Source: Oculina patagonica
Taxonomy: Eukaryota
Assembly (NCBI RefSeq): GCF_052425735.1
Contig: NC_135759.1
Location: 34,224,001 to 34,288,000, forward strand
Length of the DNA stretch: 64,000 nucleotides
Direction: 5' to 3'
A program made the position numbers and the translations under genes. Positions 22,201-37,708 of the stretch are shown here, piece after piece. A model generated the notes under the pieces. That model worked only from the letters and a program-made list of their open reading frames with translations, was not told the origin of the DNA and did no database searches. The first letter of the stretch is position 1; every line of letters starts with the position of its first letter.

Positions 22201-22914
22201 GGATATATATTTTATACATCGATGGTATTCATTTATCATTTTCGTTTAATATTTTTAAACACTTATCTGAGCACTTGGAAGTAGTTGCTAAGAAACAAAA
22301 AGGCTCAAAAAGGATTTCCTTTTAATATATGTCAAGACTAACAAATCGTCGTTCATTAAAAATCCTTGCAAGGGAAATTCGATTCCCTTAGTTTCTCGTT
22401 TCCCACTTTTTTTTTCAACTTATTTTAGTGTAAAAACTATGTGGACTCTTTCTACACGAGTTCAAATATAATAAAACACTAATTGAAACCGATACTAAAC
22501 TGAACTTACTTAAGACTACGTTCATTTAGTTTTCAATGATGATTGCAATTGTTTGCCTGTCATACATTTTGAATGCGACTTAATTGCACCTTTTTCCTCA
22601 TTCAAGTATTCAAATTCTATTTTTGTCTTAAAGCAGCTCAAGGTGATAAAAAAAAACATAATCGTTGTAGCGATCGCAGCGGGATTAGGAGCGCAGACTA
22701 CGTCTGCATGCCAGAAATACCCTTGGAAGGACGAAATATTTTTTATTCATTCTCTGAAATTTGTTATTTATCACTTCGTTTGGCGCAATCATCTTGTCAT
22801 TATCCGATATCCCCTAAGACCGATCGTCAAACGCCATGATTCCAAAAGAAATGTCATTATTCCGTGATTCGACGTAGAACAATTTTAATAATGCAGTTGC
22901 CATTGTTTTTGCAG

Positions 22915-24628
22915 TGGCGGTAAAACTTACTCTGGTCTTAGCGGTAGTGGTCGGGGTAGCCTCGGCCCTAGCCGCCGCGTTATTGGCCGTGTTGTGCAAG
23001 TGCTGCTGGGTATGGTGGCGTTACCGCAGAACACGCCGCAAGCGCAGCCCATCTCAAGAGACTTACGTCATAAACCAAAAGAGCCAATGGCCAGGAGGAG
23101 GGTTCACTTATCAAACTTATGAGAACGGTTCTGTAGCTGATTATGATAGCATCTCCAGCGGAGAGGAACCCTACATTGTTGAAACGCCCGGCGACTTTGG
23201 TAAACTTCAGTTCTGGCTTGACTTCAATAGGGAAGAAGATGTCTTGATCATAGGATTGGTGCAGGCCAAGGGAATCATTTGCAGGACGAACGTTCAAACG
23301 GCGTTCGTTTATCCTGTCATACAGCTCTATAAGGGCGAAAAAAGATTGGACGAGAGGGAAATTGAAAAACAGAAAATGACGTTTGAGCCACAATGGAATG
23401 AAGAAGTGCTGTTTTCGTTGGATGGGAACCCAGTTGAAACACTATCGTTTTGCATTCGGTTAATTGAACAGGACTCGTTTTCAAACTCGCATTTGATTGG
23501 TCAAGTGGAGCTATCATTGGACGAGGCAGACTTTAGCAAACCGCATCCCAATTGGTACGATGTTGTGGGCGAACCAAAGGTAACAAAAGCCACTTTGAAA
23601 ACATTTTGATCTGCAACATTTCAGTTTCAAGCATAATTTTAGTTGAGGAAAACTGATTCCATATGTTAATCAGTTCTAGATAGAATAATTAAGGAAAAGA
23701 GGAAAATTCTGATTATTCGTATTCCATTTGTCTGTCTGCCATTAACACACTGTACTCGTCAACCTGAAAATCGTCGAAATCGTTCAGCAGTGCACTTATA
23801 TGAACGCCCCATAACTACGTATTCGATATCATCATTTCATCATTTGAAATCTACAGCTAACAAAATGCCATGCCTTTGTTTCAGTAAATAATTGCAATCC
23901 AAGCAATGAGCTTCTTTTACGTTGCAATCATTTTTAGCTGCCTTTCACTTTTTCTCCACAGAAGCCGCCACACGAGTACGTTGGTGAGCTGCTTGTCTCG
24001 TTGAACTACTTCCCCACCACTCAGCGTCTAACGATTGTGATCCTCAAGGCGCGAAACCTAAAAATAGAATCTACATCCGGGCTATGGGGTGAGTATCGCG
24101 CATTATATGACGTCACGAAACGTCATTATTGTTATTTTTATTACCAGTATGTTTCTTTGGTATTGTTTTCTTTTTTGTGGGAGGGGGAAGGGGTTCGGGG
24201 GAGGCGCTTTAAGCAAGAAATGAAGTTTATAGAGAAGTTATATTGCCATGTTGCTCAAACCGTTTACAATATTGATATTTTAACCCGGAACATTGTATGA
24301 TTGTATTTTGTCCACAGGTCCCGCAGTCAAAGTGTTCCTCATGTTGAGCAGAACGAGGTTGGGCAAAAAGCGGACTGCCATGCAGAAAAAGACTTTAAAT
24401 CCAGTTTACAACGAAGCTTTCACATTTAAAGTCACCTCGGACACACTACAGAAAGTTACTTTCAAGATTCTTGTCGTCAATAAACACTCACATGGGGCCG
24501 ATCAAACTATCGGTCAAGTGCTACTTGGTCAACAGGTGACCGGAAGTGGTTTTTCACATTGGAATCACATGTTAGCCTCGTTAAGGAAGCCTATTGCCAT
24601 GTGGCATCCCATAGTTCCTGGCGCGTAA
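22915..24628 (+). CDS. Synaptotagmin-like protein (N-terminal TM, C2A, C2B), predicted Ca2+-independent
   Basis: Exons 22915-23579, 23962-24088 and 24318-24628 splice in frame. TM followed by Cys and Arg clusters. C2A GKLQFWLDF...PQWNEE; C2B GELLVSLNYFPTTQRLTIVILKARNL...KKRT..KKTLNPVYNEAF; C-terminal HWNHML...RKPIAMWH. Candidate upstream exon ends at 19548. Confidence 0.92.
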
Positions 24629-24872
24629 AGCTGTGCTGGGCACGTGACTCCCGAGCATTCTCATAAGGAACGCTCGTTATTTATTTAAATTGTTTCAGTG
24701 AGTTAAGTAAGATAGAATATAAATTGAATGAAAAATAATTTTAATTGTAAATATTAGAGTTAAATCATTAGAGTAAGATTTCTTTTTAAAATGTGGGTTT
24801 CTGACAGTGCAGGCATTGTTATGTTGCAGCAAAAATACGGCGTATTTTTGAGGTGTTTTTTGGTTAGTTAAA

Positions 24873-25132
24873 CTAACCTATCCTCAACGGTAGTCTAAGA
24901 CTACTGGTGCGCTCGTCTCCAGAGATCCACCTTGTGTACCACAAGTGTTGGATCACTGAGGTGGGAGAAATAAGAACTTTTCTCCCATTACCACCATGCC
25001 TTACGCAGTGTTGACGAGTTCCAAAGAGGACGAAACAGCTGTCCACTGCTGCTAGGCTGGTGTGTTACCTCAGTCTGGAGATGAGGAAAGTGCACATACC
25101 TGAGCGTAGTGAGTCCAGTTCACTAATAAACA
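24873..25132 (+). mobile_element. Retrozyme-like structured element carrying the hammerhead
   Basis: Nested helices 24912-24923/25074-25085 and 24955-24962/25067-25074; hairpins 24924-24954 and 24963-24986; possible TSD TAGTTAAA at 24865 and 25133. Confidence 0.6.
25005..25049 (+). ncRNA. Type I hammerhead ribozyme (C3U core variant)
   Basis: Stem I GCAGTG/CACTGC; core TTGACGA; stem II GTTCC-AAAGA-GGAC; GAAA; stem III C-AGCT-G; cleavage triplet GTC with predicted cut after 25043. Confidence 0.8.
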
Positions 25133-25481
25133 TAGTTAAAAATATTTAAACTTACACTTCGAGTTCATTTCAGTTTGTTAAGAGAGTGTTTTTATGCAGA
25201 AGCTTCTGAACGTACCATATTTAAAACAAAAACCTATTTTTTTTACTTTAAAATGTAACTAAAACTCGTTCAAGAGCCACGAAGTTCCGTTCAATTTTAC
25301 GTACCTACTTTCTACGAAATTATCAATGGTTTATTTTTTAAAGGGCAGAAACCTTTTCTCGATTTACCTAAATGTCTCCTCAGCTCGTCTGTGAGACACA
25401 GAGGGCTGCAACTGTATTGACATACAGTGTACTGTATAATGGGACAACCTTACAGAATGGGGTACTGAAATGGACTACTGA

Positions 25482-25767
25482 AGCTTGGGTCAAACGAGGA
25501 TGAGAGTTGATGAGAGTTGATGAGAGTTGACTCCCATGGGAGTTTTTTTTTCTTATGTTGATTTCTCATTGATCGACAGTCGATCGACTGTCATCAACTC
25601 GGGCCAAACGATAACGAGAGTCAGTCAAACCCTTACGACTCTCGTGAAAAATTTAAGCACGTTCAAAGTCGATGAGGATGCATGAGAGTCGATGAGAGTG
25701 CACGAGAGTTCATGTCAACGAAAGGAGGGTGAACTCTCATCACTTTCATCCTCGTTTGGGCCGAGCT
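25482..25767. mobile_element. PIF/Harbinger-like MITE with GATGAGAGTT subterminal repeats
   Basis: TIRs AGCTTGGGTCAAACGAGGATGAGAG / CTTTCATCCTCGTTTGGGCCGAGCT. Confidence 0.7.
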
Positions 25768-28310
25768 TATTAAACAGCAGTATTTGCAGCGGCTTTATGC
25801 TTCGGAAACCGCCGCAGAGAGCACAGTTGGAGAAGTGCCGCCAGTTGCAGGCCACAAGGGGGTGCCGAAGTGCCCAAGCGCTGCCCAGAAAAAAGGAGGG
25901 AACACAAAAGGAGACGAGAGCCACACGGGGCGAATGATGACGTCATGGCGAGGAGGAGGGGGAGGCGCCGCGCGGCCGCCCGAACCGGACGCGAGGCCTG
26001 AACACACCGGAACCGGAGACGGCGGGCCAAAGCAACAAGGCCGAGAGGAAAAAGGCCGAAGGGGAGGCCGAAACGAAAAGGCCAAAAAGGCCGAGCAACT
26101 TGTGGAAAGCCCTAGCCGCAGTTGAACAGTAAACTGGTGAGCGACCTCATTCAGAAAATTAACTTATTCTCGCATAAAAACGCATTGTACCAACCATTAA
26201 ATTAATATTATATGAGGCCCATAATCGCGGGATTTCGGGCAAAATTCAGAAAGGCCCTGGTGGCCTGCATGGAAAAGTCCAGGAAAAAAGAGGCGAAAAA
26301 AGTATGGCCAAATTTGTTTGTCACAAGGTCGATCCCAGCTGCAAAAATTTGCGGTAAAGCCACTGTTTGGGTCGTGTTTAAACAGACCGGTGGCGAGAAA
26401 ATGGTTGAGAAGGTATAATAAGGGAAGTATTGTGTCACAACTACCAAAGTTAGGATGTGGTCATATTTTTTTAATAATTCGGGACTGAGAAAAGCTGGTA
26501 AAATGGGGATAATGGTATTGGTGAAACAAAAATATAATGCTTTAAATTAAACCAGCTCGCAATTGTAACTGAAAGGAGTGAGTTTGGGTGTAGATATTTT
26601 ATGAACGAATTGAAGGGTCTTGTACTTATCAAGGCCATGGCTGCAAATAGGGATTTATACAAAAACAGCTCAGTGGCTAATCCAATATATACCTGACCTC
26701 ACACATTCCCACCCTAGAAGGGTCCACCTGTTAGGGGTGGAGTAGGGAAGGCATTGTTCAGATACTGGACTTGTCACTGCTATGATCAGATTATAAATTC
26801 TGTAAGACAGAGTAAGAATTATTGAAAGGCCTTGTATCAAGCCCATTGCAGAAACACAATGCAGAGTCTGTGAAAAGCAATAAAAGCTTCTTCATCTGCA
26901 ATGGCGCATTTCATTGTTTTTAGTTATTCCGGCGACGTTAAATAATATTCTTAATTTCCTTTAGCTTTTTTTGTCAGTCTGTGTTAGCTGGGTGCCGGGC
27001 ATTTGACCGATAAAACAAGCTTTGACTCCAAGGCAATCATTTTTTTAAGTCTAAGGTACTTATCTCCATACTGATCACTGTAACATGCGTTCACAGATGT
27101 GTGTGTTATCTCGATCAACATTCAGTGGACGCACCCGTTGTGTTGCAACTTGTTTGAATAAGAATATTTGCGGAACAATGGTGTATATGACCTACAACTA
27201 AGTTGGGCTCTTCGGATTGCCCTCCTCCCAATCTTCTGAGAAAATGACCGTAATCAGTTACGCTTTAGTTTATTATTATTAGTAGATCGTTTAGGGTAAC
27301 TTAACGAACTAAAAAAACAGATATGTGAAAAAATATTCACGTTTAATAGTTACACCATATGGTTACACTAGGTCTTGGTAGCTACTGAACTAAAAATAAC
27401 CTCTAAAATTTTTATTTTGACTTTGTCAGAGTAAATCCAGTTTACACTGAGAAATGAAAGACACTAACAAACTATAAAACGCCAGCGGTAAACATCCATA
27501 TCTATGCACAACAAACAAATCTCTTTTTTTACTCGGTAGCCAACTGGTAGCCTCAGTTTGCTTGCATTTCTTTTCTGTTTTTTTTTTTTTTATCGTTCAG
27601 TTAAGACCGCACTGCAGTCATTTTTTTACCTTATTTTCTTTGGAGCGAGAAAACGTAGAGACGAAAAACCGTGAAAGGCCTGAAAGCGCAAGCAGCGAGA
27701 ATTTCTCCCCTTTCATTTGCTTAATTGCTAAATTTCCGCCCGCAAGTAGGACCTAGGAAAAAGAAGGCGACTTCTCGGAATTCATTTAAGAGTGCTAGCC
27801 TGCGTGGCCGGCGTTCGAAGGGGAGGGAGAAGGGAGATTCGATAGTTTTAGCAGTTACCGTAAAACTCAGATATCAAATCCCCCGAAATAAACTCCCCTT
27901 TCTGAAAAAAAAAGTCCACAAAAACCCTCAAAAAGAAATATATGCACCCATGTGCATGTATTTGAATTAAGCTGTCTTTAAAAATGATGCAGACGGAAAC
28001 TTTTTGATTACCCACCCCTCCTCTTGAGCATATTTTGTATTATAATACAAAATGTTCAGATATTGTGATGTTCATTGTACGGTTTTAGAGCTTGTTATAT
28101 ACTTCCTATCACCATATTTATAGTTTAACCATGCACTATCCTAACATACAAGTTCAAAGTCCCTTCAAAAACATAGGCCCAATCATTTTGTAAATAGAAA
28201 ATTCCTTGTTATATGAAGCCTCCTTTCCAGTACTGACTGAACCCTCCATAAACGCATTTGAACAAAAGTAAATTAAAGATTAATTTAGTAGAAACCATAA
28301 GGGTTGGTTG

Positions 28311-37464: not shown

Positions 37465-37708
37465 CAGCGTGGCCAAGTGGTTAGAGCGCTGGACTTGAAA
37501 TCCTGAGGTTGCGAGTTCAAGTCCTGTTCTGACCACTAGCTGAATTTGTCCTCGGTCACCCACCGGAGTTCAACTTCTCGGCTACGCTTGTAAATAGTCA
37601 ACTGGTCTGCCTCCTGCCAGTTGGGATTTTAACAATGTTATGTTTATTTATAATATTTGTTTCACATTGGCCCTGCAAAGCCCCATTCGGGGAGTGGTCA
37701 ATTAAGTA
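37465..37708 (+). mobile_element. tRNA-derived SINE
   Basis: A box TGGCCAAGTGG and B box GAGTTCAAGTCC, followed by a ~170-bp non-tRNA body. Confidence 0.75.

Follow-up and report, generated by a model that had tools for sequence, protein, structure and literature searches.

We have analysed a hammerhead-bearing element in a stretch of coral DNA of 64,000 nucleotides (the window), and we consider it highly likely that this element is a young, 5'-truncated monomer of a 379-nt non-LTR retrozyme with Penelope-like marks, which entered the 3'UTR of a synaptotagmin-like gene in sense orientation and has decayed since its arrival. The kind is a known one, the animal non-LTR retrozyme, and the window element adds one more family and one more copy to it. 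The preliminary description of this DNA had left two readings, a co-opted and attenuated self-cleavage switch on the mRNA or simply a decaying retrozyme copy. The second agrees with what was found, namely a truncated solo copy of a dispersed repeat, flanked by a target-site duplication, at a site that is empty in relatives, with a core change (C3U) seen in 0 of 27 other copies. The coordinates of the features are collected in Table 1.

Table 1. Features of the element and of its host gene, in window coordinates
Feature	Position	Strand	Evidence
Solo 5'-truncated copy of the 379-nt hammerhead repeat unit	24837..25138	+	Unit 15-313; blastn 97.7% over 302 nt against the L002 unit
Type I hammerhead with U at C3 (25011), C>U in helix II (25020) and TGC duplication (25046-25048)	25005..25049	+	RF00163, 39.8 bits
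Predicted self-cleavage site, after GUC	25043..25044	+	Rfam alignment and motif
Target-site duplication, 5' copy, AAAAT (boundary uncertain by ~1 nt)	24832..24836		Junctions; single target copy in L055-L059
Target-site duplication, 3' copy, AAAAT	25139..25143		Junctions; single target copy in L055-L059
Element-borne AATAAA (unit 302-307), first canonical signal 3' of the stop	25125..25130	+	Pattern scan; present in the family consensus
Last coding exon of the synaptotagmin-like (C2-domain) gene, stop 24626-24628	24317..24628	+	ORF list; GT..AG joint 24087>24317; homologues
Inferred 3'UTR holding the element (end approximate)	24629..26900	+	RNA contigs, conserved block 26578-26968, AATAAA 26879; strand and continuity inferred

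The motif belongs to the type I hammerheads of Rfam. In a scan of the whole window, the Hammerhead_1 model (RF00163) matched over its full length (model positions 1-45) with an E value of 1.3e-6, and its covariance-model score lies above the gathering score of 34 bits, at or above which a sequence counts as a member of the family. The description of the motif as a complete type I hammerhead was thereby borne out. It is the sole hammerhead in the 64 kb, and a permissive Rfam scan of window positions 20-30 kb found nothing else credible. Its three helices are arranged in the type I topology, with helix I open. Helix I has 6 bp and continues past an internal loop into further pairs, the same ones from which an extended stem I had been proposed; helix II has 4 bp and a 6-nt loop, one of the pairs being G-U in the window copy; and helix III consists of 2 bp with an AGCU loop, inside a perfect 8-nt palindrome (25035-25042). 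The cleavage triplet is GUC, and the cut is predicted after 25043. Compared with the hammerhead core (C3-U4-G5-A6-N7-G8-A9...G12-A13-A14, together with A15.1-U16.1 and an NUH triplet), the window copy shows a single deviation, the U in place of C3 that had been noticed before, and the consensus of the 379-nt family retains the conserved core with a canonical C3. The 260-nt stretch that had been delimited at 24873-25132 has a folding energy of -105.5 kcal/mol (z = -6.5 relative to 200 shuffled sequences); the motif-bearing unit that it marks is real, but slightly wider.

What the preliminary description had stated as fact all stood. PMC4209133 distinguishes a 'canonical metazoan type I' hammerhead from a stripped-down 'minimal' Penelope variant, and by these definitions the window motif has the canonical metazoan architecture and not the minimal one. 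Beyond the single core deviation, nothing favours a chance resemblance in which 25005-25049 would hold no real hammerhead. The Rfam E value for the window and the dozens of sister copies that keep the motif with a canonical core rule it out, and we leave it virtually no probability. Elsewhere in the window, a partial tRNA-like match lies at 37470-37527 on the forward strand (Rfam tRNA, model positions 8-63, 29.4 bits against a cut-off of 29) and may belong to a tRNA-derived repeat.

The element is one copy of a dispersed family. The reference unit was taken from a head-to-tail array at locus L002 (period 379, 2.4 copies, 98% identity), and in comparison with it the window copy lacks 14 nt at the start and a tail of ~60 nt at the end. 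In the 529-Mb assembly, the 281 nt around the motif match at least 58 pieces with 84-100% identity, a lower bound for which a first look gave 127 candidates, so that the genome-wide count places the element in a dispersed repeat that includes short tandem arrays. Hammerheads are spaced 377-379 nt apart at two loci, and the family hammerhead with a canonical C3 scores 47.3 bits at 25 places in the genome. At least 71 hammerheads exceed the Rfam cut-off genome-wide, a count that rests on a rough first look at ~70,000 candidates. Considering this number and the dispersal of the family, a single hammerhead in a 64-kb window of this coral genome is unremarkable. In corals, the type I hammerheads of retrozymes and Penelope-like elements number in the thousands, with more than 6000 in Acropora millepora (PMC7229834). 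A second, commoner hammerhead family, distinct from the 379-nt family, scores 50.8 bits (for example at C4:60429995-60431208 and C4:2871705-2872158), and its copies stand ~410-615 nt apart, in tandem and head-to-head.

The 379-nt unit is protein-free, with a GC content of 45%; no stop-free stretch longer than 71 aa was found in it, even in a unit dimer. When folded as a circular monomer cut at the ribozyme site, it reaches -140 kcal/mol with 70% of its bases paired. In RNA contigs, the depth of the family sequence is a few times that of the flanks. Retrozymes are recognised as short (about 150-450 bp) non-coding units with a type I hammerhead in head-to-tail tandems and with target-site duplications longer than 4 bp, and the family has all of these; its duplications measure 5-11 bp at many copies, and the window copy has AAAAT on both sides. 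Accordingly, the family resembles the animal non-LTR retrozymes of Acropora millepora, mussel and axolotl (Cervera & de la Pena 2020, PMC7229834) in being a protein-free repeat of a few hundred nucleotides with a low GC content, in carrying one canonical type I hammerhead per unit, in its tandem arrays and target duplications, in the highly self-paired monomer fold and in its stony coral host. On the other hand, the window element is a lone truncated monomer and not a tandem, and it is known here from sequence and contigs. The units also differ in size and array length, as those of A. millepora measure 220-240 bp in arrays of up to 62, whereas the loci read for the 379-nt family hold up to 2.4 units.

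The insertion anatomy was read from the junctions of ~30 sister copies. These have target-site duplications directly at their ends, variable 5' ends that reflect truncation, and no poly(A) tails. Many inserts open with a partial upstream unit and total more than one unit (for example, unit 246-379 followed by 1-318), which points to a multimeric or circular RNA as the template, in line with what has been proposed for animal retrozymes. Many also carry an adjacent inverted, 5'-truncated copy. The outer end of the inverted copy always lies at unit 377-379, and the direct copy stops at unit 311-319, shortly past the AATAAA of the unit; composite inserts with these two ends occur at L003, L006, L009, L011, L013, L017, L025, L027 and L029. 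The difference between the two ends indicates two distinct DNA ends, with the ~60-nt tail on one side only. At three loci, L017, L018 and L019 (C1524:18194-18549, C13:27993395-27993750 and C13:27945661-27946016), the same inverted-plus-direct insert has near-identical flanks, which indicates a segmental duplication ~48 kb apart on C13 and, on the unplaced contig, probably a redundant assembly copy.

Such marks are those of Penelope-like elements, whose described hallmarks are 5' truncation, pseudo-LTRs in the form of partial tandems, an inverted 5' copy and a tail on one side only (PMC8557442). All four are present across the sister copies, and the window copy shows the 5' truncation and the missing tail only. 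The family further shares with Penelope-like elements (PMC4209133; PMC8557442) the strength of the 5' truncation and a hammerhead with a short, palindromic helix III, which could work in dimeric form. It differs from them in the length of the tail (~60 nt against 30-40), in having the canonical rather than the minimal hammerhead, and in its coding content, for the unit has no RT or GIY-YIG frame within or adjoining it and the target duplications directly flank the short copies. It is thus not an autonomous Penelope-like element. The GIY-YIG endonuclease is a marker of Penelope-like elements in animals, and GIY-YIG frames are abundant in this genome, with at least 150 matches, many of them as inverted pairs, and open frames of up to 1371 aa. 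A shallow search of 16 GIY-YIG loci did not reveal an autonomous Penelope-like element whose ends match those of the unit; the sequence that the unit shares with these loci is limited to 37 nt of the hammerhead core, in 2 of the 16, and up to a distance of 1.5 kb from the 16 best GIY-YIG matches there is no Rfam-level hammerhead. One copy (L054) is followed, 2.3 kb downstream, by a GIY-YIG fragment, which was considered as a partner and rejected, being an unconnected remnant of 199 aa that is not contiguous with the copy.

The state before the insertion is preserved in relatives, whose contigs were found through the protein of the last exon. Five of them (L055-L059, ~88% identical in non-coding DNA) align to window positions 22800-24837 and then continue straight at 25140-25477. 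In the relative, 5 nt are shared by both alignments, and there is a single target copy where the window has AAAAT, the element and AAAAT again. The unit is likewise missing from relatives at a greater distance (L060-L070) and from the syntenic locus L032, which is genomic, and so the insertion was absent from the orthologous site in every relative examined. Considering the precise empty site in these alignments, the insertion is lineage-specific. An empty-site haplotig was not found in the same assembly, in which the unique left flank occurs only once. Two public RNA runs, X2 and X6, come from more diverged samples (roughly 93-97% identical to the window). In X2, the match of record 16 ends at 24837 with 76 nt left over, and in X6, the match of record 23 begins at 25140 with 32 nt left over; these break points are those of the empty site, and X2 and X6 therefore probably represent alleles that lack the insertion.

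Two further insertions lie in the same 3'UTR. The one at 25478-25772 is MITE-like, with terminal inverted repeats of 27 nt (25481-25507 and 25742-25768) and internal 10-nt GATGAGAGTT-type repeats; it is very high-copy in all four runs, absent at the site in L055-L059 and probably replaced by ~42 nt in run X6. At 25811-26114 there is a GC-rich piece of ~300-304 nt, which contigs of X1, X2 and X15 (DNA) leave out, with 7 nt of common sequence where the two sides meet. It is absent in L055-L059, and its 3' half is 76-82% identical to dispersed repeats; this third lineage-specific insertion is polymorphic or specific to the assembled individual.

The host gene is synaptotagmin-like, its best named homologue being a Stylophora synaptotagmin-1-like protein (79%), and downstream of it follows a BTB-Kelch gene, in conserved synteny. 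The hammerhead begins 377 nt 3' of the stop codon, close to the ~380 nt given earlier, and the pattern scan confirmed that the AATAAA within the element is the first canonical one after the stop. X1, X2 and X6 are RNA runs, with GT..AG joints at 23577>23960 and/or 24087>24317 (two joints in X1) and zero intron depth, whereas in the DNA run X15 the introns are covered. X1 differs from the window at 8 positions over 24317-24866 (~98.5% identical). One spliced X1 contig extends from the first coding exon across the 5' junction of the element and breaks off 30 nt inside it, at 24866, because the repeat interrupts the assembly; another spans 25105-25244, across the 3' junction of the element. RNA cover continues to about 26812-26853 and ceases from 26889 onward, where X15 DNA still covers. 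The block at 26578-26968 is 82% conserved in distant relatives and contains the AATAAA at 26879. These spliced contigs entering and leaving the element, together with the conserved distal block, support the earlier placement in a synaptotagmin 3'UTR; the element very probably sits inside a 3'UTR of roughly 2.3 kb, whose strand and continuity we infer from contigs of other individuals. This 3'UTR measures ~1.5 kb without the three insertions and ~2.3 kb in the window lineage. The RNA data are assembled contigs, in which strand, transcript ends and cleavage are invisible.

It has been observed in Xenopus that exon-overlapping retrozymes lie mostly in 3'UTRs (bioRxiv 10.64898/2026.07.22.740005). 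One possible effect of such a position is that the AATAAA of the element would act as a proximal poly(A) signal and shorten the 3'UTR from ~2.3 kb to ~0.5 kb in part of the transcripts, so that this, and not the ribozyme, would be the consequence of the insertion. The position of the signal ahead of all other canonical ones is consistent with this, and many sister copies end 5-12 nt past the AATAAA, which fits an RNA 3' end formed there. However, the X1 contig across the 3' junction and the cover to ~26.8 kb indicate that the transcript reads through the hammerhead and the AATAAA of the element at least some of the time, the insertions are without poly(A) tails, and transcript ends do not appear in contigs. 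Accordingly, we regard such a poly(A) effect as distinctly improbable. The ratio of coding to distal-UTR depth in X1 (filled) and in X2 and X6 (probably empty) was 0.5, 0.16 and ~1.3, respectively, without a pattern, contig depths being unfit for such a comparison.

Four substitutions and one 3-nt insertion set the window copy apart from the majority sequence of 27 other copies, and each of these changes occurs in 0 of the 27. As there are only these five differences from the family consensus, the copy is young. Three of them fall within the ribozyme, namely C>T at 25011 in the core (C3U), C>T at 25020, which turns a C-G pair of helix II into U-G, and the duplication of TGC at 25046-25048, which enlarges the bulge on the 3' side of helix I and so loop 1. 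The other two, C>G at 25086 and A>G at 25135, lie outside it. C3 pairs with G8, and C3U is expected to strongly lower hammerhead activity; a figure for the rate loss was not found in the papers searched. That three of the five changes lie in 45 of 302 nt has a binomial p of 0.026, in a post hoc test on five events, and this clustering hints at more than plain neutral decay, at a level too weak for a claim of selection to disable the ribozyme. Position 25011 is C in every contig that crosses it in four public runs, including X15 (DNA) and X1 (RNA), both of which have the insertion junctions; since contigs can drop rare variants, C3U is not seen in these runs rather than absent from them.

These changes could be read as the disarming of a harmful ribozyme. 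An active sense-strand hammerhead would cut the poly(A) tail off the mRNA, crippled alleles would be favoured, and the mutations would reflect selection and not drift. The clustering, with each of the three changes on the core, helix II or loop 1, agrees with this idea, as do the intact core of the family consensus and the depletion of Xenopus retrozymes from exons (bioRxiv 10.64898/2026.07.22.740005). Against it, the clustering was tested post hoc on a handful of events, and X1 and X15 carry the insertion and yet read C at 25011 in all contigs, within the limits of what contigs retain, which suggests that an apparently intact copy is probably tolerated at the site. Moreover, a short helix III makes a lone hammerhead copy a poor cutter (PMC4209133), and the 2-bp helix III of the window copy may already have had this effect. 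We therefore consider selective disarming unlikely.

The opposite reading is the co-opted switch, in which the synaptotagmin 3'UTR would have kept the hammerhead as a means of tuning mRNA stability, as for the mammalian Clec2 hammerhead, and C3U would have set its cleavage to a slow rate. The Clec2 hammerhead is said, after the work of Martick and colleagues in 2008, to be discontinuous, conserved at orthologous sites and able to lower expression. The window motif is like it in lying on the sense strand in the 3'UTR of a protein-coding mRNA, and unlike it in being contiguous, transposon-borne, mutated in the core and absent from the orthologous position in L055-L059, L060-L070 and L032. The sense orientation in a transcribed 3'UTR would suit a switch, the motif is still above the Rfam cut-off, and a U3-G8 wobble could, on general grounds, keep residual activity, U3-A8 hammerhead variants being noted in PMC4209133. 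On the other hand, the empty site in relatives means that there is no conservation, the copy is young, C3U was unseen in all four runs, two of them with the insertion, and two more transposons inserted into this 3'UTR in the lineage, indicating that it tolerates junk. The preliminary description had itself counted absence of the insertion from relatives against a switch, and we accordingly give this part of it very little probability.

Returning to the decaying retrozyme copy, its origin may be pictured from the anatomy of the family and from the literature. Tandem or multimeric transcripts would be cut at each hammerhead into 379-nt monomers, and these would fold into a highly paired, branched RNA that a host tRNA ligase could circularise. 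The circle may then be copied to DNA by the reverse transcriptase/GIY-YIG endonuclease of a Penelope-like element through target-primed reverse transcription. The window copy has one hammerhead only and thus cannot release a monomer. Considering C3U, the U-G pair in helix II, the enlarged loop 1 and the 2-bp helix III, poor or no cutting is predicted for it, and the mRNA would read through a poorly cutting or dead hammerhead. The window copy retains an intact cleavage triplet, helix I 3' strand and 8-nt helix III palindrome, so that cutting in trans is conceivable, in which an intact sister transcript would pair with the synaptotagmin mRNA as a 'double hammerhead' and cut it at 25043. We attach scarcely any likelihood to this; if it were true, the level of a neuronal-type mRNA would track the abundance of retrozyme RNA, only in carriers of the polymorphic insertion.

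In summary, little rides on the single copy, which documents a lineage-specific insertion of a ribozyme element into the 3'UTR of a conserved synaptotagmin-like gene in a coral. The sister copies provide clean Penelope-type scars for a short non-coding element, with a tail at one end, an inverted 5' copy and inserts of more than one unit, and such scars bear on the copying mechanism of these elements. The samples with and without the insertion in public data form a natural experiment, in which it may be asked whether a 3'UTR hammerhead has a cost to the mRNA and whether the ribozyme is preferentially disabled later.
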